Translations under genes and position numbers: made by a program | Sequence record: OR805292.1 | Reading direction: 5' to 3' (one strand) | Length of the DNA stretch: 64,000 nt | The notes under the pieces: model-generated | Database searches by the model: none | The model's input: the letters and a program-made list of their open reading frames with translations, nothing else | Told to the model about the DNA's origin: nothing | Shown: positions 42,283 to 63,385 of the stretch, piece after piece | How positions within the stretch are numbered: the stretch's first letter is position 1 | Layout: every line of letters starts with the position of its first letter

Positions 42283-42596
42283 TTTACATTACATACACAT
42301 ATGCATATACTATATACAAGTTATGCGCTGTTGCATACGTAAATACCTCCTATGTTGTTTAGATATGTCGATTCTGGTATAACCAGATAGACCTAAGGAT
42401 GATGCTAGTGATTCCTTAGTATTGTATATTCTAGCTGAGTATAAAGAGTAAGGGGCTTTATACAAATAACAATTCCTTAGGCAAGATATACCGCTCCGTT
42501 GTGCTGACGAGCATAATTTGCCCAGATACAGAGCACGTGACTGGTCTGAGGAGCATTTATATCAGAAAGGCAGACTTATGTTTGCCTTTCTTTTTG
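42283..42596 (+). ncRNA. Candidate ~280-nt sRNA including its promoter and terminator
   Basis: TTTACA-17-TATACT (42283-42311), internal hairpins, AGAAAGGCAGAC-ttat-GTTTGCCTTTCT plus T-run; no ORF inside. Confidence 0.55.
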
Positions 42597-42606
42597 AGCA
42601 GATATT

Positions 42607-42705
42607 CTCTTATTCACTTTCTTATTCACTTCTATTTCGTTTATCATTTCCTTATTCATCTCTATTTCATTTATCATTTCCTTATTCATCTCTATTTCAT
42701 TTATT
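42607..42705 (+). repeat. Pyrimidine-rich tandem repeat
   Basis: About 2.5 copies of a 30-mer TCTATTTC(A/G)TTTATCATTTCCTTATTCATC plus CTTATTCACT x2. Confidence 0.88.
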
Positions 42706-42708
42706 ATT

Positions 42709-42826
42709 GCAAATAAGACTAATTCTTATTTGCGTTTGTAATTTCATTTATTATTGCAAATAAGACTAATTCTTATTTGCGTTTGCAACGAAAAAGAATA
42801 TGCAAATAATAACTAATCTTATTTGC
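42709..42826. promoter_or_regulatory. Cluster of three 25-bp GCAAAT-N13-ATTTGC palindromes (Fur-box-like)
   Basis: 42709-42733 and 42756-42780 identical (GCAAATAAGACTAATTCTTATTTGC); 42802-42826 is a variant. Confidence 0.8.
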
Positions 42827-42998
42827 ATTTGCACTGCCTAGTATATGGATTGGTAGCATACTTGGAAATGGATAGTAAATAAGTAGTTGATTTGTTTATA
42901 AATTTTAATTCTACATCGTACTGATTGACCTTGCTATATATAGCTCGCGCGCGTATACAAGATGGTAAAAAATAATTTAAAAATATTTTAAAAAATGC

Positions 42999-43122
42999 TT
43001 GACTTTCCATTACTACGACCTTAAAGTGCGAACTGTAGACGCAGTGTGTAGAGCGCTACATAGTAAGCAACGCAGAAAGTAAACAAAAAATGCTTGACGC
43101 AACGCAAACTAGGCTCTACACT
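42999..43122 (+). promoter_or_regulatory. Tandem sigma70 promoters with A-tract UP elements
   Basis: AAAAAATGC-TTGACT-17-TAAAGT and AAAAAATGC-TTGACG-17-TACACT. Confidence 0.8.
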
Positions 43123-43205
43123 GTATACAAGCTTAAGGGGTAAGTGCCCCGAAAGTGTAGTAAGTAAACAACATAATCCTTCCATCAGCTACAGAGGTAT
43201 ACAAC

Positions 43206-43910
43206 ATGTCCGTACATATCACTCGTCAACGTACCGACAAACAGCACGTCCTGGCACTGGCAATCAACGGCGTGGTCATCGGCCAGACTATGGCTACCTA
43301 CACCACCCCGAGCAAGCGCACCTGGTCAGCGACCGCCGAAGTCGAACTGGCAGACGGCACCGTCGTACAGTTCGAGCAGAAAGAAGTGTTCAGCGCGATC
43401 CGCATCACCCGCGAGATCGAGCAGGCGCTCGACGGCAAGGAACTGGCGGCCAAGTACACCCCGGAACCGAAAGTTCCCGGGCAGAAGGGTCCGAAACCGC
43501 TCACCGACGAAAGCCGACTCAGCAACGCGATCGCGATCGTCAAGGCGGCCATCACCCACACCGGCTTCGACGAAGCTACCCTGGTGTTCGACGGGGTCGA
43601 CAAGGCCAACTTCGAGCAGAACAGCACTTCCGTCGGCAACAAGCTGCGTCGCCTGGGCTTCGTCTTCGAACTCGGCGCCGGCAAGGCGAACAGCGGCAAG
43701 GGCTTCCTGATCAACCGCAAAGCGCAGGCCGAGGCAGAAGCTGCCGAACGCAAGGCCAAGCGCGACGCCGAGAAGAAGGAGCGCGAAGAAAAAGCGGCGG
43801 CTGCCAAGCGCGAAGCTGACGAACGCAAGGCCAAGCGCGACGCCGAACGCGCCGAAAAGGTCGCTGAAAAGAACGCAGCGATCGCCGGGGCGGCGCAGGA
43901 AAGCAAGTAA
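43206..43910 (+). CDS. GC-codon protein with charged Ala/Lys/Glu-rich tail, possible DNA-binding protein; paralogue of 61898-62380
   Basis: GAGGT SD; shared N-domain (NGVVIGQ...VFSAIRI); duplicated ERKAKRDAE. Confidence 0.85.
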   Translation: MSVHITRQRTDKQHVLALAINGVVIGQTMATYTTPSKRTWSATAEVELADGTVVQFEQKEVFSAIRITREIEQALDGKELAAKYTPEPKVPGQKGPKPLTDESRLSNAIAIVKAAITHTGFDEATLVFDGVDKANFEQNSTSVGNKLRRLGFVFELGAGKANSGKGFLINRKAQAEAEAAERKAKRDAEKKEREEKAAAAKREADERKAKRDAERAEKVAEKNAAIAGAAQESK

Positions 43911-43925
43911 TTGCCCAACTGCGCC

Positions 43926-43952
43926 GAAAGGGGAGCAAATTGCTCCCCTTTC
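43926..43952 (+). terminator. GAAAGGGG-type terminator
   Basis: GAAAGGGGAGCAA-a-TTGCTCCCCTTTC. Confidence 0.88.
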
Positions 43953-46869
43953 TTCATGACCATATAATCTATATACTACTGTGTCTTTAACTATATTTTC
44001 TATATCAGCTAGTTTGTATTCAATAACTTGGTATTCTATGCCAGCGACACAATGCTGTTATATAGACATAATAACACGCGACGCTGATATTTTTATAACC
44101 TATCCATTTTATAATAACATACTTGTATCTAAAATTATTTCTAATACAATACCTGTAGGAAGTTATGAACACTATATTAGAGATATGTCGTGGAATAAGA
44201 AATGATTATATAACAGTCAATAATTTTACATATGACTACTATCTAGAGGTAAACACACCTGCGTTTTCTTTAATGATAATTATTCCGACAGTTCCTATAT
44301 TAGACAATACTTGCATTACTTTTATAAAAAAGTATTAATATGAATATATTCTTTATATCAAACGGTCTATCTAATATAATATATCACAAAGATAATTTGA
44401 TACAACATAATATACATATGATAGATATTGAGATTAATAATTCTACTGTTATTTGGCTTACATATTCTTTCAATATTACTAAAGTATCATTTAAATATAT
44501 TATCTAATTCATTTTCTTATTGTACGAATTGCAATTGCAAATTACTCTTATTTGTAATTGCATATAAACAATCAGTTGCTATTAAAAGTATTTGCTGTTA
44601 ATATATTATATAACAGTGCAATTGATATTTTAAAATACAGTGTGCAATGCATCTTACATGTATTAAAATTTGTGTGTTACTTGGTTTGCATTAATGATTA
44701 ATATACCTCTCTTACAGTACAAAACTAATACTATAGACAATTTGTTCGGGGGATCGTTCTCGAAAAGTATACAAGTGAGAGATAACAGTCTAATTATACT
44801 TGTTAGTTTTTATATAGAAGGTTCTAAATATAGAAAATTTGTATACAACAAAGAATACCTCGAAGGGATTTCAGCATATGCAAACAACAATCGTTAATGC
44901 CCTAAAATCTATTAATGTAAAGTATTCGGATATATTTTACACAAATGGTAATTTGTGTAATACTGTTACAATACGAAATATTCGCAAAAACGGTAAATTA
45001 GATTCGGCAGAACAAATTAATGTTGAATCAGTTGTGAGCAATTATTTGATTCAAAAAGATTTAAATTTGCCCTTTTCTATTCAATGGGCAAATAATGCTT
45101 GCTGTGAAGAGTATACTACACTTATTCTCTTCTTCAGAAAATAGTGTATGATTAGATTAAAAAGATATGTTCAATTGCATAGCATATACAGATTGTCTTA
45201 CTATGCGCACGGCATACATTTTAGCAAAACAAAGAAGATAATGCTTTACGTAGGAAACGCAGGTCCCGTACCCGTAACATGACAGTATATAGCGTTAAAA
45301 TGTGCATTTTTTGCACGATTTTGCGGGGTATGCGTTACAAGCAATACACACATACTGCTTTTAAAATGCATGCTTACATGCGCTTTGTAGGGGGTTTAAA
45401 ACATGCTTAAATTAGTTACCACTGTGCTATACAACGTCTGTGTAGCTTCGTTGATAATGATTGTGTTTGTATGTGGTATAAATTTAGTAATGTATATAGA
45501 TAACAATACTGACAATAATCCAGTTGTTATCTTTATTTCCCTTCTATCGGTTATTTGGGGCGTTGCGCGGATAAGCTATATGTTTGTTACTATCCAATTT
45601 CAGTCCAAGAAATAAAAGTATTGGTAACATATGATAGATAAAAACGGAAATACAGAAGACTTTGATTTTGATAAGGCATGCACTATAACTGATCTGTCTG
45701 TTCCTCTTCAGCAAAAAATACAATCATATAAATTAAATAAAATATTGGTTATGGTTGCAATCCTTAAATATTCGAATATAAAACAAGAAATTGGATGTTT
45801 CGCTATCATATGGGATCATATAATAAAAATAACAGTTGAAGTAAAATGCAATCCGTATGCAGAAACACACATACTCATGCATGCGCATGTATTTTCTAAT
45901 TCCGATTCATGTACTCATAGTGTATTGCTGAATTACAGAAACAAATATTTACCCACTAATTATTATAATTAATATGGAAGATATTCTTAAAATTGCTAAA
46001 CTAATCGGGTACGTAAACATACATGCAAATAAACATTTTCAGTATGTTTTTAACAAAGATATGGAACATGTATGTGTTAGTGCCAAGACTAGGACAAGTA
46101 TGAACGGAATAAAATACCTTTATGTAGTAATGAATATATATTATATATATTGCCATCAAGAAAGTGTTGCCGTTATATTAAACGAAGTAAACACTGATGA
46201 AATGCCTGTATTAGATAATCTTTATGCTAAACTTAATGATTTAGTTACACATAAATCTGTTATAAAATTTAAATATACAGAAATAACACAAGAACAAATA
46301 GATTTGTTGAATAATAGTGAAAGATATATAGTATATTTTGACTCTAATTTAGAATACGGAATAGCTTCGTTTTATTAATTTTGAGGAATATATGAAAAAA
46401 CAAACAGGTTTTACAGATTGGCCATTGATTAGTTTAGGTACAATTATTATCTTGTGTGTATGGGTATTAATTCTACAATATACAGAAATAAATGTACTAG
46501 AAGAAAAATGTAACAAAGTAGGTGGTATTTTTAATAACACCGTTTGCATACGGTCAGATGCAGTTATTAATTTAGATAAGGTAAAATAAAATGCCAAAAC
46601 TTTACGTTAACAAAAAACATGATACCATTTATCTTCAGTTAGATCATTTCTCATCTAATACTGTATCTCCAATTAATTACAACGAAGATGTAGAATATGT
46701 AATTGATAGGATCCGTAGTCTGCACAAATCCGGCTTCGGATTTAGTCATATGAATACTCTACAAGAATATCTTACGGCAAGAACAGAACAGGATAAGAAG
46801 TTTAAGCTTAAAGTAGAAGACTTCGAAGTAGTATCATTTAAGATTTAAAATTATACATAATCAAAGTAT

Positions 46870-46898
46870 TTGACATTTGATGTGTATACTAGTATAAT
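46870..46898 (+). promoter_or_regulatory. Perfect sigma70 promoter with no downstream ORF
   Basis: TTGACA-17-TATAAT. Confidence 0.92.
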
Positions 46899-46904
46899 TT
46901 GCTC

Positions 46905-47520
46905 ATGCTGTCGTAACAGCTACTTTGTTCCATTCACAAGCAGCTCTGTTCCATTATTGGATATTGGTAGTAGAAACTATCCCCATCGTGCCCACAGTAT
47001 TGTTCTGTTAGAGACAGGTTAAAGCATACAAAAGTGGGTTATTTAAATTATGATTTTGGGTGCTGAAGTATAGTCGTTAGACAAGGATATGTCTAATGTT
47101 GCAAAGGACTATGCGAAACGTATTATATATCTTATCCGATATTAGATATGTAATAAAAGGATGAAGCTCTGGTAGAAACAGAGTGTAATTCTTGCTTGTA
47201 TTTCACACGGATATACAAAAGAATATACACACCAACTTCAGCATTGATGTGAATTTTCTAGCATAGGTATATAACATCGATGTTCCGGGATTCATTGGAA
47301 ACAATGAGAGAATGATGTAATCTGAGGAAAAAGGTCCCCGCCTCGTCCATATTACGAAATGGTTTTGAGTACTTATGCCCTCGTCCTATATTGGCATATG
47401 GGTTTTATATTCTCCCGTAATTACGGGAGAATATAATTTCCTGAACCTACTTGGAAATGGACGCTTCTGCTGTGCTTCGCACAGCATCTAAGGGCCTTCA
47501 CCCTTACCGCTAAGAGCAAG
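46905..47520 (+). ncRNA. Candidate ~620-nt structured RNA
   Basis: Nested long-range helices (TGCTGAAGT/ACTTCAGCA, ATAGTC/GACTAT, GTCCAT/ATGGAC) and many hairpins; no ORF of 60 aa or more. Confidence 0.65.
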
Positions 47521-47763
47521 AGCAAAAGCAATATAATTACAAATAAGAATTAATTATTGTTTAGTTTTATCGTAATGAATATGAAGATAAAAACTAAACA
47601 ATAATTCACATGTAGCGTTAGCTACTGTGAATATCTACTATAGTATTAACCATATATGTATACAAGGGCATAATATGACTGTTACTTGTTGACAATTTGA
47701 TATATGTGTTACACTTCGTATATTAAATATACATTACAATGTTTTGATTATTAGGAACATACT

Positions 47764-48900
47764 ATGTCATTATCTCTGACTGCTGCTATTAATCGATATA
47801 CTAGTCTAATAGAAGAAAATTTCAAAATAAATTATCTGAAGAATTTTGAGTCAGGATATATCTCATATAAATTACTAAGAAATAAAACATTCCTACATAC
47901 TGAAATATCACATAGTCTTGATTATATAAAGGTAATTATTTCTTATACATATGTAGAAAATGATGTCAAACTAGATGAAAAAACACCTGTTGTACATTCG
48001 TATATTTCTATTACTGATTGCTCTAAATTTAGAGTAGGAGATATAAGAATGTTTTACGATTCAGTTCCTCGTGGAAATGTTTTTAATATTAAAGAGAATA
48101 CTCAAGTTAGTTGGGCAACAGCTAATATTGGAATTCACGAGAATCCGTTTAATCTTAATTATATTTCGAACAATAAGTATATTCGATTAGAAACAGGAGA
48201 TATATTTGTCTGTATTAATGATAGTATGGTAAATGAACTACAAGAACATATGCATGTTCATTCTATATGTACTGACAAAACAAAGAAGTTTTATGTAAGA
48301 GAAATTGATTTGAATATGCTACATTACAAAAAACACATTATGGAATAAAGAATGAACTACAAAGCATTAGAAGTATTTTATTTCTTTCTAGAACATTACA
48401 AGGTAAATCCAGTTGCCGACTTGGAATTTAAATTCGAACCCTCAGGTAGTGATGATCAATCTAAGCGCAAGTCATCACTGTCGTTTGTTAAACGTATTGG
48501 TGTTCTTACCCTTCCATTCAACGAATTATACGAAGTTCAGAATCGATTCATGTCAGATCTTCGAGAAATGAATGTAGTATATAAGATAGGATTTAATTAT
48601 AATGCATTCAACGTATTAGCACCTTTGTATGCAAGATATGAAAAGAATGTAAAAGAATTTCGTCGACTTTTAAAGAAATACTCAAGTTTCAACGAAGTAA
48701 CAGAATATTACAAAAAAGCTAACAACATGTTACCGGACAATGTATACGAAACAATGAAGGAAGATTTTTCATTGTTTAACGACGTTACTACAAAGAGGTT
48801 ATCTGAAATAAAACTTTGTTATCCTAATTGGCAAGTATGGGATTCTGAACATCCCAACTGGGAAACAATAAATCAACGTTATAAGAATGCAAAGAAATAA
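47764..48900 (+). other. Two hypothetical ORFs (47764-48348, 48352-48900)
   Basis: AGGA SD, chained ORFs, terminator at 48911. Confidence 0.75.
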
Positions 48901-48910
48901 TGCATATTTA

Positions 48911-48976
48911 GAAAGGGAATTATAATTCCCTTTCTTTTTGGATCTATATTAGCAAATGCTAATTAATCTTATTTGC
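48911..48976 (+). promoter_or_regulatory. Terminator plus 25-bp palindrome junction
   Basis: GAAAGGGAATT-ata-ATTCCCTTTC then GCAAATGCTAATTAATCTTATTTGC (48952-48976). Confidence 0.8.
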
Positions 48977-49612
48977 ACAAATTTAATCCTATTGTGTTTT
49001 CTATTTTGAAGTGCTACATTACATGTAGTTGCATAAAACTATACACAGGAGAAATGATATGTGGGATATCAAAGACGGGGATGATATCGAAGTCGAAGCA
49101 GTTATGGATGAACGAAGCTATGAGTGGACCGGCAAGTTACGTATCATCCAATATCGGACCCTTCAATCAGCTCAGTGGCGTGTTATTATCAATATAGTAG
49201 AATTTTGGAGTCATTCTACTGAAAGTATACTGAACGAACTTGGTATAGAAGCTAAACACATCACTAAAGGATATGCCACACTTAGCATGGTTCGTTTCCC
49301 GGAGGTTGATTACCTATTTAGTGTAACACCCGATAATGCAGATTATGTAACTGTTAACCACAGTGCAGTAGACATTACTGACAGTTGGTTTGTTGCAAAA
49401 AACATAAAAGCAGTTATGTATCATATGGGATCTGAAATCCAGATCACTCCGTGGTTTGTGCGTAAAGATAGTGGCGAGTCAAATTTCAATTGTATTGATC
49501 GATTAGTAGCTCTAGTGAAAGAGAATACTGATGTCGACACGTATCAGTACATCAAGATAGGTTGTCCTGAGGACAAGTCATTTTACTTTGCGTGGATAGA
49601 CAAATAATTCGT

Positions 49613-49649
49613 TTGCTATACGTACTAATACGTTGTATACTGTTAGTAC
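49613..49649 (+). promoter_or_regulatory. sigma70 promoter of the GC island, overlapped by an inverted repeat
   Basis: TTGCTA-17-TATACT with CGTACTAA-N-TTAGTACG spanning the spacer and -10. Confidence 0.7.
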
Positions 49650-51734
49650 GCATAGTAGAAGTAACACATAACGTTTTGATTTAATGGAGTTCTAACATGA
49701 AAAAAGAATTTGAATCGTGGATTCGGACTCGTTCTCCGGCGCCGCTTGCATATAATGCAGCCGACGACTTGTACCTCAACCCGCATGTTCAGGCACGCTA
49801 CGAAGCCTGGAAAGCCAGTCGTATGGCACTAAGGGTAGTGTTGCCGAAATCTCACATGGCGTCGGAATACGCGCCCAAAACAAAAGTTTTCAATACAACC
49901 GATATGGAACTGGCCCTCCAAGAAGCCGGCATCGAAGTGTCGCTATGAAGACGTTTTTGAAGATGCTCGCATATTGCGTGCTTGGGACATCAATTGGCAT
50001 TGCCATAAGCCAATGGTTCGTCTTCGTCCTAGAGATGAGGCTTGGCACCGCGCTCTGGTACATCGTTGGCCTTGGTCCTGTGCTGCTTGTGTTTTGCATT
50101 TTGGGCAGCTTCCTTCACTGGCTGATTCATAAGCACTTAGAGAAAAAGTAATGACCGGAATTGAGGTAGTGAAATGAGCAGACTAACAGCCGAGCAAGCC
50201 CGTGACATAGCGCGAGCGAAAGACGATGTCGATGCCATCCTTAACGACATCGCCAAAGCAGCAGCAGAAGGAAAGTACGTGTACACTACCCGCGCCTATG
50301 GGTTCGGCATCGGCACCTCGCGGCGCAGCGAAGCGATCCTCAAAGTGTTGCGTAGCCTCGGCTACGACTGTGCGGTGCATGCTGAGGGACGCCAGTCTGT
50401 TGACCTGTGGCTTGAAGTGAAATGGGGAGACAAGCCATGACTAACAACCCCGGAGATTCAAAAATGATCGTAGAAAACACCAAGCAAGCCGCCGAAGACT
50501 TCAAAACTTCCATGGCTAAGATTTTTCCGAATTACATCGCCGCCGCGTCGGTTTCCGATAACCTTGGTCCGTCGATGACAATTTCGTTTGCGAATGTCGG
50601 TTGCGCTTCCGAAGCCCCGAACAGCATTCTGATGAATGCGAGCGGTTACATGCGCTTTATGATGCATTTGTGTGACAATCGCGGGAATGTATTGCCGGAA
50701 GGTTCGCCGGTCGAAATTGAGCTGCTAACGTGGTCTATCCCCTATCGTTCGGAAGTGATCAAGTTCCGCAAGATCAAGGGCAAGACACCAGCCGAAGCTA
50801 TGCAAAAGCTAGTCAAGTGGTTTGAAAAAAACGCCGAAGCTATCCGGGGTCTGTAATGGTCTCCACGTAGGACACGCAGAATGAACATTGTGTTGGACAA
50901 ATTGCTGTTTGGCGGTTTCATCGACCAGCACCGCAATGAACTTGCCCAGCAACAACTGAATCGGTTGTTTGCCAAGTACGGTGAGCCGAAGATTGGTATC
51001 ACACGGGCATGCTTTCTATCTAAGCATTACGTCCTGAAGTTCCCGATTAATGACAGGGGTGAGCGGTGCAACGATTGGGAAGGTAGCTGTTCTGGCAGCT
51101 ACTTGGCACGCGGACGCTGGCTAGAAATCGGAGGCTTCATTTGCGTCATGCAAGAGCGTTTGGTTGAAGTGGATTGGAAGAACAACACCTGTGCAAACTT
51201 TCCTGATTGGGTAGGCAGCATAGATTGTGGTCAAGTCGGCTACGATAAACATGGCGTTCTGAAAGCGTATGACTTTGGGTGAAGCATGACCATCAATTTG
51301 TTTGTTGTCAACACAAAGAACGAACCTATCCCAACCGACCACAGGTCGATACTCCGCTATCTTGGCCTTAGCCTGCACACGCAAGGCTGTCGCGTATCTG
51401 CCAAATTCAGCAGCGGTAAGTTGAAGCTGAACAACTACAACATCGAATTTTTTCACATGGCGGACGAGAACGATGAACTTCGCCGCCTTTGCTCCTGCGC
51501 TAAGCAATATAACCTCAGCATGACACTGCAAGCGAAGGAGGAGATCACATGATCTGTGTAATCGCTCTAGTCCTTGCCTTCTCTGGTCATCCCGGGCTGG
51601 CCATTTACGCCTGCCTAATCGCTTACATTTTGGGTGACTAACATGCGCATCGTCAGCACTCCACTTCGCAAAAGCGCCCGTAATTGTGAACACGCCCTTG
51701 CAAAGGCTATTACCGAAATGGCGGAGATGATTCC

Positions 51735-52049
51735 ATGACCGACACCAACAAAATAAAAAAGCTAGCAAAACTGGCTACGCCGGGTCCGTGGTATGCGACC
51801 TGGGAGGAAGGCGATGACATTGCATGGTCGAATCTGTTTCCTGTAATCCAAGCGGACAATGGCGAAGTCGTGATCGGTAACGAAGGCTTTTACAGCGATT
51901 TGGAGCAGGACAAGGCTAACGCCACTTTCTGTGCTGCCGCCAACCCCCGAGCCGTCCTCGACTTGCTAGACGAGATCGACAAACTCAAGGCAGAGAACGA
52001 GTCGCTGCGCGAGTCTGTCGATCGACTTGCCGAGATGCTGCGATCTTAA
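51735..52049 (+). CDS. Ead/Ea22-like protein
   Basis: KLAKLATPGPW ... NATFCAAANPRAVLDLLDEI. Confidence 0.75.
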   Translation: MTDTNKIKKLAKLATPGPWYATWEEGDDIAWSNLFPVIQADNGEVVIGNEGFYSDLEQDKANATFCAAANPRAVLDLLDEIDKLKAENESLRESVDRLAEMLRS

Positions 52050-52073
52050 CGAAATCCTCAAAGGAGCTACCAA

Positions 52074-52301
52074 ATGATCGACATCAACAAAATGAAGAAG
52101 CTAGCGGAACAGGCTCTCGATTGTAAATTTGATAGCTATGTGGCGTTAATAGCATCAGCAAAACCACAAGAAATTCTCAGTCTTATAGCTGAGCTGGAAC
52201 AGCTAAAGGCAGAGAATGCCAGAATGCGAGCAGCACTACAGGCTGTTGAATCGGAGCTCACCCATATGACATCTACGAACAACCCGACTGGGAAACAATA
52301 A
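52074..52301 (+). CDS. Ead/Ea22-like short paralogue
   Basis: MIDINKMKKLAEQA ... ASAKPQEILSLIAELEQLKAEN. Confidence 0.6.
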   Translation: MIDINKMKKLAEQALDCKFDSYVALIASAKPQEILSLIAELEQLKAENARMRAALQAVESELTHMTSTNNPTGKQ

Positions 52302-52826
52302 ATCAGCTTTATAAGAATGCAAAGAAATAATTGAAGTAAAGCGAGAGAATTATCATTATGATCCTACCAGAAGGAGCAGCATAAATGAGCCTCAAATATA
52401 ACGGATATGTCTTTAACATCGGTATCCATGGTCAAAACGAAGCTATTAGTGAATACGCCTATCCCACTGATGATCCCGAAAGTGATAAAAAGAAAGCTTT
52501 TTTGGCTGCAATGACAAAATTCGTCGAATCAGATGATTTCGAGAAATTTACTAATCAAATGTATAACAATTTCTCGATTAATGTTCAAGCACTAGTTTCT
52601 ACGTCTACAGAGTAAATTTTCAGTATTGATGCCGATATAGACTATTTCAGTTTCTTGTATCAGCATCAATATTGCAGAAAATAAAGAATAATTAATTCCA
52701 GTTCTTTGTTCCTGCATTAAATGATAATAAAGAAGGCATGACTACTTTGTCTTTGATGCTAAGTAGTAATTATCTTATGATAACTACAAGCATATCGACT
52801 AGCTATTATAATAAAGGCAAAAATAA

Positions 52827-53003: not shown

Positions 53004-53054
53004 CATTTACAATATATCTATAAAAGAATATATTAGTAACACAGTTGTTAAATT

Positions 53055-53079
53055 GCAAACACTAATTAATCTTATTTGC
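53055..53079. promoter_or_regulatory. 25-bp palindrome (Fur-box-like)
   Basis: GCAAACACTAATTAATCTTATTTGC. Confidence 0.75.
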
Positions 53080-53244
53080 ATTTGCTATCTTGTATAATAG
53101 AAACGACTTCTAAACATGGATATGGGACAGAAAACTTAGATAAGATCTCTGTTACAAATTTTTGAGTTACAATGCATAGTAGTTTTGCTATTATGTGTTT
53201 ATAGAAATGTAATAACAGAACTAAAACATAAAGGATTGTCCGTC

Positions 53245-54896
53245 ATGAAAAGTTACGCAAAGTTTTATGTAGGGACAAACATTTATGATGCCGAAGTACC
53301 GGATTTAGACATAAACATGCCAGATGCAGAACTTTTCGAAGTAGCATTGCATCAAATGGCAGTACAGTGGTCTAGCACTGCCGGGCATCCGCATCACAAG
53401 GATGCAATGCGTAAAGACGGAAAAGTAGCCCGGAGTAAAGAACGGGTGTATATTCGCGGCAACGGCTGGTCAATTTCGTTGCATAGTCCCGAATTTGTAG
53501 AAAAACATTCGGCATACCTTGCCGCAGCAGAATGGAAACTACTAACAGATTTGCTTGTATTTGACACCTGCTGGAACGCTAGTTAGTAATTCTCTCTACA
53601 CAGGAGAACGGTAATGAATGATATCAGTGTAAGAAATATGCGTTATATTGTACGTGGTTTTGTTACTCATGCAATTGCCCAGGGTTATTCAGTTTCCGTT
53701 TATGAAGGGGGCGATTGGGCGATCGAGAAGAGTACTTCTGTAAAAGATATTATGAATTCTATCATGTCCACCGACAGCGATACATTCTGTATCTATAATG
53801 CAGAGAAGGTGAAGGTAGGTCATGTGTATTGCATTTATTGCAATAGTGATTACGAAGTTATTGCAGATTATACCGATTCACCTCTTATGCAATCGATTCT
53901 CGTTGAAGCTCTACGCAGAGCAAATCGAATAGAAGAACTGAGCTGAGAAAAAGAAGCAGGAATTATTCCTGCTTCTTTTGTATGTTACAAGTTAAACAAG
54001 ATTATTTTGCATTTGCTATGTAATAATATTTTCTATTGAATTAAATATTATATGTGTTACTATATGCACAGTGCTGTTAAACAAAGCGATAAATTAATAG
54101 CTATGGCAAATAAATTACATATCATCTGTGCAAAATGTGGTAGCACTCTTATAAACATAAAAATACCAAAAGTATGTGCAGATGATCCATTAAATGTAGT
54201 ATATTTTTCGTGCGAAAACTGTAAGGAACTTACAGGCATATACGAATGGGCAGAAACAAATAATCGCAAAGTAGTTGACGATAGGTAAGAAGTAAATGGA
54301 AGCATATACAGATTGCCCTATCCTACTGATCGGTGATGCTCCGCACGAAGAAGCACCTATAAGAAAAATAATTATAAAAGGTTATGATTTTAAATATATC
54401 TGGGCAGTATACTATTATATGGATTTAATTCCTATACGGGTTCAGATAAAACGCTGTTATGTGTACGAAACTCCAGGTAGAGTAGGTCATGTAAAATCTA
54501 TTAGAGAAGAAGTATTAAGAAAACGCAAAAAGAAACAACGTGACATATGTGAATACGATACATATCAAGATGAAGACGATTTTTGGAAAGGAATGTATTA
54601 AAATGCATAATACTCGTATTGTTGTTCGACTCAATGTTATCACTCCTATTTCAACTGCCAATGGCGTTGTAGTTGATTCAGTAGTCCGCGGGCATCGAGC
54701 AGGCATTAAGCAAGGCAAACAAATGTATCATGTTTATTCTATTCAAACAGGCGAGTATCTCGGTTTGAAATCAGAAGACGACGTAAGCGAAATTAAACCG
54801 TCTTCGTATGAAGAATTTCTTACTCCGAGAACAATTACTTCAACCGAAGTAGAACAAATTAAATCTTCTTTCGAATGGTACGAAGCTAACGTTTGA
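53245..54896 (+). other. Hypothetical cassette ORFs (53245-53586, 53614-53946, 54052-54288 Zn ribbon, 54296-54601, about 54603-54896)
   Basis: SD-preceded ORFs; terminators at about 53947-53978 and 54900-54925. Confidence 0.7.
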
Positions 54897-55131
54897 TATA
54901 AAGGGGGAATAATTCCCCCTTTATTTTTCTTTTATAAACATAAATAATTCGCATTTGCACCGAAGATGCTTTATAACGCATAAATTTACATAGCTAATAC
55001 ATACATATTGCTAACGTTAAAAAGCGCGTTATATAGCTTATAATTGCATATTGTGCAATGCATTTGTTGGTGTTATATTAAACATGCGCAACAATCAACT
55101 ATACAAAAACATTTATTATGGAGATACAACA

Positions 55132-55422
55132 ATGAAAAATACACTGTGTCTCGTTGCATTTTTGGGTCTCACAGTAATAGCTCACACTTATGCAGCAGAT
55201 TCTGCAAATAAAGACGTGAGTACCCTCACTATGGAACAGGATCTAGAAACATATCTAAACGAAGAGTTTGGATTAACAGGGAAAGTTAATTGCAATAATG
55301 CTGTTAACGGAATGTTCGAATGTGTCATGCACGACGGACAAAAGAAATACATGTTTGCATGCAATGCAGAAGACAGTGTATGCATAGTAGTATCTGTCCC
55401 AATTAAAGGAATTCGGTTATGA
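55132..55422 (+). CDS. Exported Cys-containing protein
   Basis: GGAG SD; signal-peptide-like MKNTLCLVAFLGLTVIAHTYA; four Cys in the mature part. Confidence 0.65.
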   Translation: MKNTLCLVAFLGLTVIAHTYAADSANKDVSTLTMEQDLETYLNEEFGLTGKVNCNNAVNGMFECVMHDGQKKYMFACNAEDSVCIVVSVPIKGIRL

Positions 55423-55829
55423 AAAAAGCTCTTTCATGTGTAATAGGTATTATTGTTCTGTTACTAGGCGTATTTATGGTAGATAATCCTGCAATAGGAT
55501 TAATGCTAGGAGGGTTAGTAGGCAGTTATATTTTCAGCATAGGCGGAGTAATTCTATGTGTTATATCGTTTATGATATTTGCACTTGCCTTTGTTGAGAT
55601 GAAATGAATGATTTATTTAAGTATTTGGACATTTGTATCTATAATAGTATCGATATATCATAATATTTTAACTATAAAAATGCATAAACAGGTACTGTTG
55701 TATAAAGATTATACTTTTTATAAGGAAAGATTAGATTTTGTCTGTAATAGTTATATATTTTTCAATGTAATATTCTTCATTTTCATTGCATGCGTTACAA
55801 AATAGATCACAAAAAGTTTTAAAATTCAG

Positions 55830-56349
55830 TTTACAGCATGCATAGTTTTACGTATTATAAACACACAAAGCAATACAGCATAACGCATTGTAAGCAACAC
55901 TAAACGGGAGACACCGTCCCGCAAGCAGCCCGCCCGCGATGTTCGCGGGCTGCGGCAAACAGGTGTACAAGGTCTAGTAACGTGGAAGGCGCAGCATACC
56001 TTTCCCTAAATCGGAAATTGGTCAATGACGTACCTGCCCCTGGACACTGCTAGACCTTGCTGCTACAAGCGGGACAGCTACAAAGGTACACTGTATGTAT
56101 CTATGCTTTACCCCGCTTTGTAGCAGGTCTTAAAAACGGTCTACTGGCATATGCTTTAGTGCTAGTAGGAATCATTAACCTACAACTATTATATGCTTCC
56201 TGGAGGTGAAGAGTATGCCGCCGCAGCATTAAATATACATTATGATGATGATAATTATGAATGCCGAAACACCGCTTCGATTCGTTTAAAAGACAGATGT
56301 CTGAATCGAATGTTTTTGGGCAAAAAGGTCCCTTAGATGGGATTTTTTT
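55830..56349 (+). ncRNA. Candidate ~485-nt structured RNA including its promoter and terminator
   Basis: TTTACA-17-TATTAT (55830-55858); helices GTCCCGC/GCGGGAC, GCAGCCCGC/GCGGGCTGC, CAAGGTCTAG/CTAGACCTTG, GCTACAAAG/CTTTGTAGC; hairpin plus T7 at 56328-56349. Confidence 0.65.
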
Positions 56350-56363
56350 GCGGCTGCTAACTA

Positions 56364-56436
56364 GCAAACGCGAATTAATCTTATTTGCAATTTAAGAAAA
56401 ATACCAGTTGACTGTAGCTTGCTAACATAGTACATT
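56364..56436 (+). promoter_or_regulatory. 25-bp palindrome followed by a sigma70 promoter
   Basis: GCAAACGCGAATTAATCTTATTTGC (56364-56388), then TTGACT-17-TACATT (56408-56436). Confidence 0.8.
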
Positions 56437-56465
56437 TAACTCATAAATCCGCAGGAGTAGCAGTT

Positions 56466-58924
56466 ATGTCGCTGAAAAAGAAACTTTTAAATTCTGTGCA
56501 GATTAAATATTTCGGCAACATTTATACTTACATTTATGATGCCGTTTATGACGTTATTTATTTTGATAACCAGCAAATGTCTTATGCCGAATTTGAAGAG
56601 GCAGTAGACTGTAAGCTAGGAGAAGTTCTGTGAATGAATATGTTGATACACACAGAGCTAAAAGAATATTAATAATTTCTTCTATATGTTTTTTTGTAAC
56701 TGGCATTCTGATAGGATACAGCCTGGCGTCTAACTCTGAGTCTGCTTCGTTATATATGCAGTATAAAGAACTTGTAAAGTCTTGCGAAGCAGAATTGCCA
56801 AGAAATGAAAATTGCCAAGTAATCGTATATGCTATACCAACACCTGAAGTAGAAGAAGAGAAACTAGAAATACAAACAATTCTCAGAGGGGTCGAAATAA
56901 AATGAGCGTATACTGTAATTGCATAGCATGCGGTGGAGATGATCCGTATGCTGTATGTGAAAATGTGTTAATGGATATCCAAAAGCACAAATATAATACT
57001 GGTCCCAGCTGGGGGCTGGTAGTTGCGGCAGTATTGTGTTTGGTAGGAATGGGATTAGCAGGTAACGCAGCACTATCTGATAAAAAAGAAACACCATGCG
57101 AAACTACACAACAAAAATAAGAGGTGTATAATGACTGACAAAACAACAGACATGTTGGTAGATGAATTTCTGTGCGAGCGTGCATCTTTTTCTCCGTTTA
57201 GCGAAGGTGTTCATGCAGCTAAACTAGGGCAGAAATATACAGACTGCCCGTATACCAAAAATGAGCCGTATGAACGTAACGAATGGATTCGAGGACATCA
57301 AATGTGGCATGATTATTCTGTTCAACAATACAAATAATATTCAGAGGATATTATGAAGAAACTATCTATGTGCGATTTTGCCAAATGGAAGGCAAACTAT
57401 TACAGCACCAATAAATCCGGTCAGCCACTCCGTCTAGGACAAGCATTTATTAACGAATTTTCCGAACAGGGTGATATGCCTCAGCCAAATCTATATTATG
57501 AAGAAGACAATGCAACTGCTGAGCTTATCATTCTAGAAAAATACATTATATACTAAGGAAGTAGTAATGTATCTTGCACACCTATTCGCTTTGGTCCCGT
57601 CTATGTTTGCAGTATTAATTAATGCTGTCTTTATCAAATACGGTTTGGGACCTGCTGCTATAATAGTATTTATGGCATTAGTTGTAACTGTAACAGGAAT
57701 TGGGTCTGTAATAGATATGATGCGTGCATTGTCTGAAGTAGACAATATTATTGATAGATAGTATTTATGTATGCATAAGAGAACTTATGAAACTCAATGA
57801 AGTTACTACAATTTCTGATCTAGACAATATTCCTGTCACTGACAAATTTATAGTTGTCGGCGAAGATATGGTAGGTCTTGCTTTTATCGATAACGATGGA
57901 AAGCTAAATGATGGATTCTTTTTTGAGTGTACTTATACTCAGAATAAGGAACAAATATTTAAAGCTGTTCAACATTTAAAAAAACAAGTAGATGAATTAA
58001 ATAATTGTAATAAAGAGAAAGTTATAGCACATGTCATGCGAGCTCCCGAGTTTGCATATGTTTGGGTATATTTTGAACAAAAACAATAGTTCTATATTTT
58101 TGATATATGCAAACGCAAATAATTAGAATTTGCAGAATCTGTTACAAACTTTCTGTTTATATCAAATACAATCATGCTATAATAGTTTATAATAAAAATG
58201 TAAGCATACTATCATTGACAGAACTGCTGTTCCAATTAGTAAAGGGTTTCATTGAGCAGCATGACATCCGTGCCTACAGCAAGCACCAAAAGAACAAAAA
58301 TGAAGTTCATTCTTTGTCTAAAGATTAAGTTTGCTGAGAAATTTGATAAGAAACTTCAACTGCTTGATTATATCAATAGTGCATTTATCATGCATTGAAC
58401 AGAAACGAAGTACTCTTTTATCTACGAGGAAAAGCAAATGAAATACAAAATCATTCTTCAAAACCGTAGCAATGGTGTTGTCGCTGAATTTTCGGTAGAT
58501 AACGAAATCAATCCCGAGATCATGGATACTTCTATTATCGTTCATGAAGGGACGTCGTATATGTATACCGGCTCGGGTGGTTCTTACTACGATACCATTT
58601 ATTTTAGTGAAATATATAAGACCATTAACACGACAGACTTGTCGTTGCTATAACAGAAAACGCTTTACAATAGCTCTAAATGTGCTATTATGTAGTTGTA
58701 CATAAAACAACGCAGGAGATTATATCATGCGTAGCACACTCGGAGTAGAACATGCATCGAGAGAAATTCTTTCTGCATGGGTTGATGTAATGCAGCAACT
58801 CAACTGTGAGCATTTCTATAGCGAACTGAAAGACAATGCAGTTCGCTTAGATTTACAGGAATATATGTATACTGAACGTCTTGTTCAGTATTATACAGAT
58901 CTTCCAGTCACTAATGCTGTTTGA
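56466..58924 (+). other. Operon of small hypothetical ORFs, several membrane-associated; includes untracked 56466-56633
   Basis: AGGAG/GAGGT SDs, chained ORFs, terminator at 58956. Confidence 0.7.
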
Positions 58925-58955
58925 CAGCCACGCTGGGCGTGAACTACATTTATTA

Positions 58956-59020
58956 GGAAAGGGGTTTTAAGCCCCTTTCCTTTTGAATGTTAAGTGTAAG
59001 TGCAAATTAATCTTATTTGC
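58956..59020 (+). promoter_or_regulatory. Terminator plus 25-bp palindrome junction
   Basis: GGAAAGGGG-ttttaag-CCCCTTTCC then GTAAGTGCAAATTAATCTTATTTGC. Confidence 0.8.
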
Positions 59021-59103
59021 TTGTTACAATTTAGTTCTTGAATTCACACATAATAGTATGTATAGTTTTAATATATAAGATACCAACATGCGAGGTTGTA
59101 AAA

Positions 59104-60525
59104 ATGAAACTTCATAATATGAATGGTAATATTTTTATTCGGTTTGAAGTAGATACTTCGTCGGATAATTTTGTAGAAAAAGTTTACGAAGAAATTATGC
59201 AGCTTCCTGCAAAATTGTATTTCGAAAAGATAGAACGTAGAACTTGGTTCTGTAGCTTTTACACAGGCTACGACGAATTGGTGGAATTCGTCAATGAAAT
59301 AAAAGACAGAGTTAGTTCAGAAGGTGTTTTCTTTGACAGGCCATTGCAGCTAACTCTTATCAATTCGGGCGGGGTAGAAGTAAATATTTCCGATATAGAA
59401 CCGGATCTTCACTATCTCTTTGATAACGATATTACAACTACAAAACTTATCTCTATGGAAGGATCCTGCAATATGGTAGATTTGCTCATGTGCGAATGGG
59501 TACCTATTAGCATTCGAACTTCTATTGCTAAGGCATTTACTGACAAATTTTTATAATAAAATACCTGTTGACGCATATAGCAATATGCGCAATAATATGC
59601 ACGAAAGCAAGAACAGATCCAAATAACCTTTTTATAAGAGATTATATTATGTCTAAGTATCTTTCTTTTAGCGTAAACGTAGACATGGACAACACTGGTT
59701 TGTTGAAATGGTTGCGTCCTACCACCGGTCGGCTGGATGGTTTTGAAGAGAGTGTTAAAAACTTCGTTTCTTCTTTCCGCTCAGTCGAGTCGAGCCCTAC
59801 GGTGTTTCAAGTTTACGATGATGATAACCAGCCGTTGCAAGTAAGCAACATGAGCTGCTTCTTCCGGTACTTTCCGGTGTATGGTATGTGCCTTGCACCG
59901 GGTTCGATGGTCAGGGAACAATATCGTCGGGAGATCCTCGACTATACTACTGACGAGTTCTGTTCATTCAGTAACTACTTCAGTGACGGCAAGGCCATCC
60001 GCGGCGGGGCAGTATTGTGGTGGGATGTAGAGAAAGACTTGGTATGGTCTGTTAGTCCCGAATTGATTCGCCTCGTATATGCCCGCTTGCAAAGCGATCT
60101 GGACATCGGGTGGTATCATCTCGGGCAAGAAGTTATGGCTGTAGTTCCTCTTCGTTCGTATCCCAACGATGTTGCCAGATGGAAATATGTACAAGGTAAT
60201 ATCTGCGGCATCGACGATCAAGTGAGCATTCGCAGCAACGTCGACGGTCGAGTCACCCGGCTTAATTGGGAATACATCGTGACCCAAGGGGGATAATATG
60301 GGCGGTCTTGCTAATATAGTTGCATGCATAGCTTCTATTGTTGCAATTGTTACTGGAAATATCTGGTATTTTATCGCACTGTTGCTATGCACAGCATTTA
60401 TGTCGCCCGAACGAAAAGGATCATTAATTGATGTATTTTCGGTCATTGTCGGGATTGGTGCTATATTTAACGGAGACATTGCATGGGGCATAGTGTTCAT
60501 AGCATTAGTGATAATAGTTAAATAG
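59104..60525 (+). other. Hypothetical ORFs (59104-59556, 59649-60296, 60298-60525 membrane protein)
   Basis: Starts moved to SD-preceded ATGs; terminator at about 60526-60555. Confidence 0.7.
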
Positions 60526-61310
60526 AAAGGAAGGGGGTTAAACCCCTTCCTTTTATTGTAGGTGTTAAATGTCATCAATTTTTTATCTTAGCAAATGGAC
60601 AGAATACATAGTAATTTTAAACAATAAGAGAATAAGGTTAAGTACAGCGAAATATTCTATAGGATATGTATCACTAGAAACACCTCGTCGCACATTTTAC
60701 TGGACACTTTTTAAATGAAATACAATAATCATATCTAAGTAGATACCTACCTTTATATCAAAAACCATTTTATGAAATATATTTCCTAAATCATATTACA
60801 AAAGTTATATTTGAATTTTGGATTCTTATCTCAACCTTGCATTGCAATATAAAATGCGAATATGAGTGTGCTATATGTATTTGCATATGCATGTACATAC
60901 GTATAAACGTATTAAGAAATACAATTTATTTTATCCTATACAATTATCTTTAATACCTATATGTTGTTTGATAATAAAAGTATAATAAGTAAAAGATATT
61001 ATCCATTATATAATGGTTTTAATATATTTCGCTGTAGTGTTGGATTTATATATTTTTCATATGATAAAATGTCATTTATTCACGACATATTCATGCAAAC
61101 CGTTTCGTTGTTCCTTACGACGTTATTATTGTTTTTACTTATAACTCCGTTATATTATATAGGATTGAAAAATCCAGTCAATATAACTACATTTGTTTCG
61201 TGTTTAATAATAACCATTCTTATAACAAGTTATTATTTTATGTCAGTTTTGACTTATATATTCTGTATTACTGTTCAGTCAAAAATTTATAAAAGAAAGA
61301 AATAATTTAG

Positions 61311-61418
61311 TTTCAATATCTTTTTCTTTTTCAATATCTTTTTCTTTTTCAATATCTTTTTCTTTTTCAATATCTTTTTCTTTTTCAATATCTTTTTCTT
61401 TTTCAATATCTTTTTCTT
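61311..61418 (+). repeat. Six perfect copies of an 18-bp pyrimidine-rich unit
   Basis: (TTTCAATATCTTTTTCTT)6. Confidence 0.95.
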
Positions 61419-61438
61419 TATCTTTTATCATTGCAAAT

Positions 61439-61549
61439 ACAAATAATAATTATTCTTATTTGCATTTAGTGATGTAAATAATTCTTATTTGTAATTGCGA
61501 TTAATTCTTATTTGCTACAATAGATAGAATAAGAATAATTCACATTTGC
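61439..61549. promoter_or_regulatory. Cluster of three to four Fur-box-like palindromes
   Basis: ACAAATAATAATTATTCTTATTTGC (61439-61463), GTAATTGCGATTAATTCTTATTTGC (61491-61515), TAGAATAAGAATAATTCACATTTGC (61525-61549). Confidence 0.75.
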
Positions 61550-61897
61550 AATGCCGCTAAAAGCGCTGTAAGCGCTGTATGCTGTGTAGTAGTGCTAAGC
61601 AATGCATTAGTACAGCTACGCGCACAAACGCTGTTATAAGCGCTTGTAGCGCGTTTTAGGGCCCATGCGCATGCGTATACCTGTAGCTTTACATAGTAAA
61701 ATGCAGAAAAGACGTCGTCTATTAACGTGCCTGTCTTAATAGAAATATACAATTGTACAATACCAGCGAAATCCTACACACTACAGACATGCAAACAAGC
61801 AACGCGCTTGCAAGCATAAAAGTTTTTAAAAAGTAGTAGACACAGTGTAGCATCCCTAGTAAGCTACACACATAAACAACACAACGGAGTACAAGCT

Positions 61898-62380
61898 ATG
61901 TCTAATGTAAGCATCCCTGCTGTAACGGTAGAGAACATCGGCACCCTGCGCATCGTGCGCACCGCTAACAAAGAGGTCGGAAGTGTGCTCGACCTAAAAG
62001 TTAACGGGGTAGTAGTAGGGCAAGCTTTCCCGCTCTACAGCACAAAAACCCAGCGTAGCTGGAACGCGAGCATGCACGCTACCGTTAACGGCGTAGAGGT
62101 GCAGTTTGCACAGGAAGGCGTGTTCAGTGCAATCCGCATTGCACGGGCGTTCGAGGATGCAGTAAAGCATGCCGTTAGCAACGGCGAACAAGGGCAACCC
62201 CTCCCCGCGCCGGCGGCGGCAGAAGCGCAAGCAGAAGCGCAAGCAGAAGCGCAAGCAGAAGCCCCGGTAGCGCAGACCGAGGATGCGCCGGAGACCCCGG
62301 CAGCCGAAGCTAAGCCCGCCCGCAAAGGCGGCAGCAAAGGCGGCAGCAAAGGCGGCAGCAAAGGCGGCAGCAAAAAGTAA
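61898..62380 (+). CDS. GC-codon protein with (AEAQ)n and (KGGS)4 tail; paralogue of 43206-43910
   Basis: GGAG SD; NGVVVGQ...VFSAIRI shared domain. Confidence 0.85.
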   Translation: MSNVSIPAVTVENIGTLRIVRTANKEVGSVLDLKVNGVVVGQAFPLYSTKTQRSWNASMHATVNGVEVQFAQEGVFSAIRIARAFEDAVKHAVSNGEQGQPLPAPAAAEAQAEAQAEAQAEAPVAQTEDAPETPAAEAKPARKGGSKGGSKGGSKGGSKK

Positions 62381-62395
62381 GCGCTGCTAACACAG

Positions 62396-63385
62396 GAAAG
62401 GGGCAACTGCCCCTTTCCTTTTATGTCCTAGTTGTAAACGCAAATTAATCTTATTTGCATTTGCACAAGTCAATCTCCGGTTGCATTACTGCGGTAAGAT
62501 GTTAGTATATATGTAGCTATACGGAGTAATTGCTATGAAGCGCAAGTACCTAAAGGCACAGTTCGAGCATGTCAGTGCCGGGCGAGTTGCAAAAGAACTC
62601 GACGAGAAGTTCAATTTCGTTGTAGGCGATAATGTACACTACTGGGCCATCTTCGAAACTAATGTCAAACCCGAAGTTCTACAAAAGGCAATTCATGACA
62701 TGAACGGTGGTGCTTACTGCCATGCATATTCTATTCCGTATGAGGATGTAGAGGAGTATCTCTAATGCTCTACTATCGCGATGTTTATGCAGGTGTTTGC
62801 TGTTAAACTTGTATAGCCGGCACCAGGTCGCATATAACACGCCTAGCCCCATGCAAACTGCGGACATGATCCATTCACGCCTGCAGCGTATGTTCGAAGA
62901 ATTCGGTTGCAAGCCCGATGGTTGCTCTGCTAGCATGTACGAGGATAAGACGCACATTACACTAGCCTGGAGCAAGTAAATGGATATGTCGATTGTGAAC
63001 AAGCGCTTCGAGAAAGAACTAGCGCTGTTTAATGTCGAAGTTCTCAGTAAGCGCACAGTGAATCATATAACGAAACCGAACATCGAAGTTTCGTTCAAAC
63101 TAAAGGGTCATACTACTGAAGAAGAGATGACCACTGTTACTCAGCTCGCACGTCCCATTATGGAGTATGTAAGCGGACGTAGGGTGGTCTGGGCACATAC
63201 CGGTCTTTGGCGCTCAATGAAAGACGACCTCGAAGTAGCAGTGCTGACAATGAAGTTATCCAAACAATAAGAGAAAGGGGCAACTGCCCCTTTCCTTTTA
63301 TGTCCTAGTTGTAAACGCAAATTAATCTTATTTGCATTTGCACAAGTCAATCTCCTGTTGCATTACTGCGATAAGATGTTAGTAT
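62396..63385 (+). repeat. 113-bp direct repeat (62396-62508 and 63273-63385): terminator, palindrome, promoter
   Basis: 111/113 identical by manual alignment; period 877 bp. Confidence 0.95.
62535..63270 (+). other. Gene cassette between the 113-bp repeats (62535-62765, about 62765-62979, 62980-63270)
   Basis: GGAG SD and chained short ORFs. Confidence 0.7.

Follow-up and report, generated by a model that had tools for sequence, protein, structure and literature searches.

What purpose is served by two loci of the same layout lying among the early genes of a jumbo Pseudomonas phage? In this study, the question was pursued in a window of 64,000 nucleotides, namely nt 124001-188000 of Pseudomonas phage Cassandra OR805292.1 (288-kb genome, 33% GC). 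Both loci present, in the same order, a tandem pyrimidine array, palindromic units, a leader of 200-400 bp, a GC-rich paralogous gene (p1 in module 1, p2 in module 2) and a GAAAGGGG hairpin terminator. An earlier note, made from the letters of this DNA, had described them as twin regulatory modules, and had taken them for autoregulated master loci or replication origins whose adjacent gene encodes the binding protein. We observed that both loci are real, and that a regulatory role of their palindromes is well supported by the conservation of the sites, their confinement to the early block, their fixed distance to promoters and start codons, the lack of transcription across them and the contrast in p1 RNA between samples. 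The description as twins is, however, incomplete, and that as master loci is not supported in the form given, as about 18 further copies of the palindromic site lie outside them and a third paralog locus lies beyond the end of the window. We consider it moderately likely that the site is the operator of a regulon of early promoters, in which the two loci carry the fullest equipment and their site arrays are the high-cooperativity versions of the single sites.

The palindromic site and its distribution

The palindrome has the form GCAAA-N15-TTTGC with the 10-mer core TCTTATTTGC, and its consensus is TGCAAAyGCGAATTAwTCTTATTTGCA. Of the 24 occurrences of the 10-mer in the 288 kb, 23 fall within a 28-kb stretch at 166.7-194.7 kb, and a weight matrix of the 28-nt unit returned 36 matches, equal to about 25 sites, all of them in that same stretch, against 0-1 in shuffled genomes. 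When the whole genome was scanned for G-poor pyrimidine-rich tracts (80-nt windows, <=2 G, >=72% pyrimidines, >=10 C), exactly two emerged, namely the arrays of the two loci, each lying on the transcribed strand. The clustering of the 10-mer, the regional restriction of the weight-matrix matches and the presence of just two such tracts show the layout to be more than chance. By eye, none of the consensuses of Fur, Fis, IHF, the GacA box, sigma54 and the MotA box fits the outer TTTGC with the TCTTAT core.

The window is 95-98% identical to ten further records of Wroclawvirus, PA5oct, MIJ3, Paride and Callisto among them. By alignment, nt 1 of PA5oct falls at window position ~34116, so that both loci lie inside the equivalent of the 39,080-bp direct terminal repeat of that phage, which is reported to hold 105 genes, with gp34-gp105 'highly transcribed' by the host RNA polymerase in the early phase (PMC7318152). 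The site-bearing block at genome 166.7-194.7 kb coincides with this early gp34-gp105 stretch. A complex of tandem arrays at 33650-34116 (periods 10, 16, 22, 48 and 90) ends where the PA5oct record and its terminal repeat begin; the GC skew switches sign there, the Paride record calls the homologous array 'CRISPR', and the complex is possibly a physical genome end or a packaging-related region.

Outside the two loci, the single copies typically stand ~15 nt past a hairpin terminator, 17-22 nt before the -35 hexamer where this is clear, and 75-90 nt before the Shine-Dalgarno sequence and start codon (SD-ATG), a spacing which places the site at roughly -60 to -80. Those listed for the window are as follows.

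44530..44557, + strand: single site, weight-matrix score 26.3
48951..48978, + strand: single site past a terminator, 84 nt before SD-ATG
53054..53081, + strand: single site found by the weight matrix
56363..56390, + strand: single site, 19 nt before TTGACT-17-TACATT and 77 nt before SD-ATG
58995..59022, + strand: single site past a terminator, 17 nt before TTGAAT-17-TATAGT
62433..62460, + strand: single site in the terminator-site-promoter unit 62380-62530
63310..63337, + strand: duplicate of the 62433..62460 site, in the unit 63260-63400

Terminator, site and promoter follow one another at 48.9, 59.0, 62.4, 63.3, 64.0 and 65.3 kb. The ~150-bp unit at 62380-62530 is directly repeated at 63260-63400, around a small gene cassette that is present in Cassandra, Callisto and PAC2 and absent from PA5oct, Paride and MIJ3, and the gene content of the phages diverges just past the 62433..62460 site. 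These composites resemble the PeSLs of T4-like phages (PMC2839356, PMC4122927), in which a stem-loop terminator and a sigma70 early promoter are repeated as a unit before small orphan genes in variable regions and bound some indels between relatives; the same joining of terminator and promoter is found here. Unlike PeSLs, which consist of stem-loop and promoter only, the present units carry an extra conserved 26-bp palindrome between terminator and promoter, the palindrome also occurs in arrays without a cassette, and its association with breakpoints is only partial.

Such units might instead be recombination cassettes without a dedicated binder, that is, PeSL-like mobile elements spread by duplication and mediating gene shuffling, with the arrays as slippage products. 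The duplication around the cassette and the variable copy number of the arrays speak for this, as does the position of the collinearity breakpoints: of 14 against PA5oct, six fall no further than 100 nt from a site (P = 0.0016), although against Paride the figure is only three of 14 (P = 0.16). Many sites, however, have nothing but the 26-bp unit in common while their flanks differ, and the near base-for-base preservation of the site in distant relatives with diverged flanks points to selection on the site itself. We hold this explanation, taken alone, to be very improbable, whereas a PeSL-like role in recombination is partly supported and could operate alongside the regulon instead of competing with it.

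Among seven close relatives, the arms of the sites are invariant and the leaders and promoters almost invariant, while the neighbouring tandem arrays change in length. The 5-bp spacer of the perfect palindromes (42719-42723, 42766-42770) is flipped (CTAAT/ATTAG) in PA5oct, MIJ3 and Deifobo with identical arms, a change that symmetric recognition or hairpin-mediated inversion would permit. A near-identical site was also found in two metagenomic contigs (L020 and L027; protein 34-45% identical), both singly before genes and as a four-unit array. Their p2-like gene is preceded by a terminator, a short CT-rich tract, four TTCTTATTTGC units, a 200-450-nt leader and promoters, the units being spaced 29, 29 and 23 in L020 and roughly 30 in L027, similar to module 2. 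L020 further harbors the site in single copies, GCAAATGCGAATTAATCTTATTTGC, at three places 80-105 nt ahead of other genes and in either orientation, and contig L021 begins inside such a site array. In contig L018, whose p1-like protein is 42% identical, the unit resembling a non-coding RNA (ncRNA) is kept, and so are the terminator, CT-rich tract and A-tract/TTGAC promoters in tandem; the palindromes are of a different type, TTGCAAAT. The recurrence of this order, four sites included, in three uncultured distant relatives indicates that the layout is conserved well beyond recent common descent; the earlier note had made its reading depend on such conservation, and it is seen in close and distant relatives alike. 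The motif is over-represented, dyad-symmetric and intergenic next to promoters, and it is conserved in seven close and two distant relatives; sites that are dispersed, promoter-proximal, orientation-independent and conserved in sequence speak for a transcription-factor regulon.

The two modules, their arrays and their RNA

Everything that the earlier note had listed for both modules, from the arrays and palindromes through the promoter-like sites and paralogous genes to the GAAAGGGG hairpins, was recovered in place. Module 1, the p1 locus, comprises the following.

42338..42591, + strand: upstream unit, equivalent of PA5oct ncRNA001 (PA5oct annotation by alignment), ending in a hairpin terminator at 42564-42591 (inverted repeat)
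42599..42708, + strand: G-poor pyrimidine-rich tandem array, with the 12-mer YCTTATTCAYTT nested in a 30-mer
42708..42828: site array of three 25-26-bp palindromic units, spaced 47 and 46 bp
42946..42959: alternating purine-pyrimidine GC-rich run CGCGCGCGTATACA in the leader, between sites and promoters
42999..43122, + strand: promoter zone with TTGACT-17-TAAAGT (42999-43027) and TTGACG-17-TACACT (43094-43122), called by the scan, an A-tract before each
43040-43068: TAGACG-17-CATAGT, read by eye between the two scanned promoters
43206..43910, + strand: paralog p1, 234 aa, GC 0.62, GC at third codon positions (GC3) 0.79; PA5oct EST35_0038
43926..43952, + strand: p1 hairpin terminator GAAAGGGGAGC-loop-GCTCCCCTTTC, from the sequence; RNA depth drops here

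Module 2, the p2 locus, comprises the following.

61297..61428, + strand: G-free pyrimidine-rich array, 18-mer x 6.1, starting 6 nt past the stop codon of the open reading frame (ORF) 60961-61305
61432..61551: site array of four units, right arms at 61454, 61483 and 61506, the fourth unit (61524-61551) inverted
61664..61680: alternating purine-pyrimidine run CATGCGCATGCGTATAC in the leader, between sites and promoter-like elements
61753..61865, + strand: weak promoter-like elements TTGTAC-16-TACACA (61753-61780) and TAGACA-17-TAAGCT (61837-61865), read by eye, below the scan threshold
61898..62380, + strand: paralog p2, 160 aa, GC 0.60; PA5oct EST35_0086 (hypothetical protein)
62394..62419, + strand: p2 hairpin terminator

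With Tandem Repeats Finder, the module 2 array (61311-61419) has a period of 18 with 6.1 copies and 100% matches, in line with the six 18-mers of the earlier note, whereas its 2.5 copies of a 30-mer in module 1 become 3.2 copies of period 30 with 90% matches (42614-42708), along with two copies of a 12-mer at 42608-42631. Its count of three to four palindromes agrees with the three units of module 1 and the four of module 2. In the former, two units are perfect, GCAAATAAGA-N5-TCTTATTTGC (42709-42733 and 42756-42780), and one is imperfect (42800-42828), and the stretch folded as single-stranded DNA gave z = -6.1; in the latter, an imperfect palindrome with 16-nt arms (61432-61464) is joined by three units that retain mainly the right arm. 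The junction TT(A/C)ATTGCAAATA that had been proposed for both modules has no match; T(T/C)ATTGCAAATA occurs at 42704, 42751 and 61428, in each case as a unit's left arm. The upstream regions of the two modules, site units apart, show no significant similarity and are thus not a recent copy, so that layout and not sequence is common to both, as had been noted, and the paralogy of p1 and p2 is borne out by 48% identity over 61 aa (E = 4e-16).

Clear sigma70 promoters are confined to module 1, again as the note had it: the scan called no + strand promoter-like site within about 350 nt of the module 2 start codon, and the call closest to it, TTGCTA-16-AATAAT (61512-61539), falls within the array of sites. 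The module 1 promoter zone is invariant among close relatives, and CAATTGTACA and AAAAAGTAGTAGACA are conserved in the leaders of p3 (the third paralog) and of the distant contigs L020, L021 and L026. A leader motif, TAGAC(G/A)CAGTGT ... TAGTAAGC, is found in both modules (43040-43075 and 61834-61872), and in module 1 an RNA contig begins directly after it (43075). Alternating purine-pyrimidine GC-rich runs number nine in the 288 kb, CGCGCGCGTATACA and CATGCGCATGCGTATAC being two of them, and similar tracts were seen in the leaders of L021, L026 and L027.

RNA was followed as assembled contigs of two PA5oct runs (X15 and X16, identified by single-nucleotide polymorphisms), placed on 41200-45200 and read as word depth. 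The ncRNA001 equivalent (42272-42575) has a word depth of ~1M in both runs, which collapses after it, and the depth is 0 across 42674-42940, covering the array end, the sites and the distal leader. RNA contigs, as well as an adapter-tagged end, start at 43047 and 43075; the depth climbs from 43076. From these starts to ~43900, at the terminator, the p1 unit reaches 265-575k in X15 against 2.7-7.8k in X16; at this one locus, in contigs of samples whose times are not assigned, the p1 RNA level is thus more than 100-fold apart while the neighbouring ncRNA is unchanged. The p1 transcript is monocistronic and strongly sample-dependent. X15 has more contig records than X16 (82,098 vs 51,736), more of a neighbouring early ORF and presumably more host RNA, which suggests that X15 is the early sample; p1 would then be expressed early and switched off afterwards. 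In the case of module 2, word-share placed ~30% of the 592 nt upstream in X15 and three other runs of the same study, X16 not being among those listed. An Rfam search at E <= 1 over 33-64 kb gave nothing credible, and a consensus RNA fold of five p2/p3-type leaders, from a poor alignment, predicted no pairs.

The ncRNA001 equivalent has no match in Rfam; in both runs it ranks among the stretches with the deepest coverage, and a counterpart with a similar terminator apparently exists in L018 (2560-3015). An equivalent of PA5oct ncRNA002 lies at about 56026-56476.

The arrays are 84% A+T and vary among relatives from 74 to 146 nt in module 1 and from 68 to 116 nt in module 2, but their G-poverty is kept in all relatives despite the change in copy number, with G = 0 for module 2 in all seven phages. 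The conserved element of the module 1 array is the 12-mer YCTTATTCAYTT (3-7 copies among relatives), which agrees with the right arm of the site at 7-8 of 10 positions; CTTATTCA has four of its six genomic + strand copies in this array, and likewise 3-7 copies among relatives. The arrays resemble Rho rut sites in being G-poor and rich in YC dinucleotides (C:G 27:4 and 23:3), 110-130 nt long and co-directional with transcription, and the module 2 array starts just past a stop codon without an intervening hairpin terminator; they are unlike rut sites in having only 16-21% C, being mostly T, and consisting of exact tandem units. They are candidates for a Rho-loading (rut-like) insulator, which would shield the sites and regulated promoters from strong upstream transcription, or for a run of weak half-sites. 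The ORFs across them, 42518-42763 (+) and 61279-61431 (-), encode repeat peptides (LSFPYSSLFH... and EKEKDI x6) whose lengths vary among relatives, RNA contig depth is 0 over part of the former, and they are probably not genes. The PA5oct coding sequences annotated here as 'extensin-like protein' and 'cell division protein FtsH' were accordingly rejected as repeat translations, the published FtsH of MIJ3 being a different, large gene.

The composition of the modules brings up the second claim of the earlier note, that of replication origins. In an iteron-type origin, the array would serve as unwinding element, the dyad units would be the sites of an initiator encoded by the adjacent gene, and the single sites would be transcriptional by-products. 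The parts list of lambda ori and of iteron plasmids (oriV/RepA) is indeed like that of the modules: strand-asymmetric tandem repeats of high A+T content stand beside four dyad units phased as direct repeats at 29, 29 and 23 bp (roughly 30 in L027), and a small gene adjoins them, promoters and a GC-rich run being close by. T4-like phages, moreover, use several origins. Against it, no DnaA box (TTATCCACA, <=1 mismatch) was found in 42.0-44.5 or 60.8-62.5 kb, the count for the window being below chance, and the cumulative GC skew has no inflection at either locus, the sole one being at 33.6 kb. Neither does the proposal explain the ~18 promoter-proximal copies, nor the site-like cluster of p3 without a tandem array, and no match to an initiator family was found in Pfam, PHROG, NCBIfam or PDB sequences. 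We judge an origin improbable, while the origin-like parts list itself stands.

Two further systems invite comparison. Like the T5 iss region (bioRxiv 10.1101/866236), the modules are untranslated, lie in a long terminal repeat among early genes and carry direct and inverted repeats with palindromes; that region has eight ordered DnaA boxes and these have none, their sites are dispersed and promoter-associated, and there is no hint of two-step DNA entry. Like lambda OR/OL, they have several dyad-symmetric sites beside a small gene, early promoters of the host RNA polymerase and possible cooperativity between sites. Unlike OR/OL, the units are 25-26 bp long, 23-47 bp apart and 190-400 bp upstream of the promoters instead of overlapping them, the further copies lie at other promoters, the phage is virulent, and the repressors are only candidates.

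The paralog proteins

The third paralog, p3, lies at genome 193188-193646, 7 kb past the window end, and is a GC-rich gene whose product has 152 aa (PA5oct EST35_0098). A site-like cluster stands ~170 nt upstream of it and a GAAAG hairpin with another site downstream, and no tandem array was found at this locus. The ORF that follows (genome 193803-194291, L006 5803-6291) is annotated 'DNA binding protein' and begins MNIFVTDTNP...CDIHL; by eye, it resembles proteins of the pyrimidine-dimer glycosylase type more than a regulator.

The three proteins share an N-domain of ~95 aa with a T-x-T-Q-R-x-W motif and G-V-F-S-A-I-R-I, modelled from a 16-sequence alignment as five strands and a C-terminal helix with high confidence (predicted local distance difference test, pLDDT, 93.5; predicted template modelling score, pTM, 0.80). 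Their tails are acidic/Ala/Pro-rich with Lys-rich ends (KGGSKGGSKK, KKGKKGSKK), and one member ends in the AT-hook-like KRGPGRPR. An additional conserved middle domain and a long charged helix are displayed by p1 and its distant orthologue P0009, though the full-length single-sequence AlphaFold2 model of p1 is poor (pLDDT 52). The genes have 60-62% GC (GC3 0.61-0.79) in a genome of 33% GC, and the distant orthologues are likewise GC-rich, which indicates that the host-like composition is old and maintained. Searches of Pfam, PHROGs, NCBIfam, PADLOC and PDB sequences yielded nothing above noise, IMG/VR scans yielded nothing, word-based protein searches returned close relatives only, and the ESM Atlas gave sub-threshold leads only. 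A profile search of 1.84 billion representative proteins recovered about 14 true members, P0012 and P0017 being rejected as false positives (RTX or low-complexity), and within 50,697 phage records the family is restricted to 11 Wroclawvirus genomes. By sequence, then, the proteins are a small orphan family.

Could these paralogs be the proteins that bind the sites? They would then repress or activate their own and other early promoters, p1, with its extra middle domain and its presence in virions, being the best candidate. All three paralog genes and the distant homologues have clustered sites or site-like repeats upstream, and the L018 protein, at 42% identity, goes with different palindromes, as expected where a binder and its site co-evolve. 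Lys-rich tails occur in all members, including the AT-hook-like end, and residues 100-170 of p1 form a helix-strand-helix-helix-strand-strand order which is kept in P0009, with winged-helix families among the weak Atlas leads. In PA5oct, p1 (EST35_0038) is annotated 'structural protein' and was found by ESI-MS/MS (PA5oct record); being virion-associated, it could enter the cell with the DNA. On the other side, there is no match to a DNA-binding family, the p1 model is of low confidence, the Atlas scores (0.64-0.70) do not reach the useful range, and three paralogs of ~45% identity would all need to recognise one site. Adjacency by itself is weak evidence, and it is on adjacency and co-occurrence that a binding function of the neighbouring gene, as proposed in the earlier note, would rest. 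We consider autoregulation by the paralogs doubtful; the idea that they are the binders is nested within the regulon, attractive from their association with the sites and from weak structural hints, and equally doubtful.

A bolder proposal, which we regard as improbable, is that the paralogs constitute a new class of phage DNA-binding proteins, having a five-strand-plus-helix N-domain without sequence-level relatives in solved structures or Pfam and a basic tail. Carried in by the virion, in the case of p1, or translated promptly from host-like codons, they would recognise the palindromes and the G-free 12-/18-mer arrays and time the early programme of the terminal repeat, perhaps also firing replication or pausing DNA entry.

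Further GC-rich ORF islands (47-58% GC) were observed at 41634-42041, 49697-52049, 59649-60296 and 63426-63988, and other DNA stands in place of the island at 49715-52246 in PA5oct and Paride. Twelve tRNA genes (Met x3, Leu x2, Ser x2, Asn, Thr, Arg, Pro and Gly) lie at 14736-18968 and are also reported for PA5oct.

The proposed regulon and its significance

In the operator regulon that we favor, a dimeric sequence-specific protein, probably phage-encoded, would recognise the dyad-symmetric site of 25-26 bp. The site would be placed ~60-80 bp upstream of the transcription start of sigma70-type early promoters served by the host RNA polymerase, across the 28-kb block of the terminal repeat. Most promoters would be governed by one site between the previous terminator and the -35 element, p1 and p2 by three or four units much further upstream, and p3 by a cluster of site-like repeats. 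Such clusters may allow cooperative occupancy and hence a sharper temporal switch, and the G-poor arrays may separate the site arrays from upstream transcription. The sign of the regulation, whether activation or repression, would be a conjectural part of the proposal.

Several observations weigh against this proposal. The weight matrix was built from the sites that it then recovers, so that only its silence elsewhere in the genome is independent, and some single sites have no convincing sigma70 match nearby. The sites of modules 1 and 2 lie at a distance from their promoters that is unusual for simple operators, and the positional regularity is partly explicable by duplication of whole cassettes (62380-62530, 63260-63400) and not by selection. 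The RNA contigs come from a phage of 96% identity and repeats can fail to assemble; the order of X15 and X16 in time is at most suggested, which leaves the direction of regulation a conjecture. Among 22 early proteins scanned, no significant match to a known DNA-binding family was found, one Ead/Ea22-like match being recorded and MerR_2 and bZIP appearing only below threshold.

For these phages, publications already cover the genomes and the terminal repeat, along with generic sigma70 promoters and terminators. In the part of the literature covered, we found neither the site nor its confinement to one region described, and the same holds for the three-paralog family and the G-free arrays.

PA5oct-type jumbo phages, including Paride, the killer of dormant cells, depend on the host RNA polymerase and carry ~100 orphan early genes in a 39-kb terminal repeat. 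The orphan protein family and the only two G-free tracts of the genome offer concrete targets for experiment. If the proposal is true, one conserved site marking essentially every early unit would be a handle for finding the regulator and defining the early regulon, and it would give a means to switch early genes in engineered therapeutic phages.

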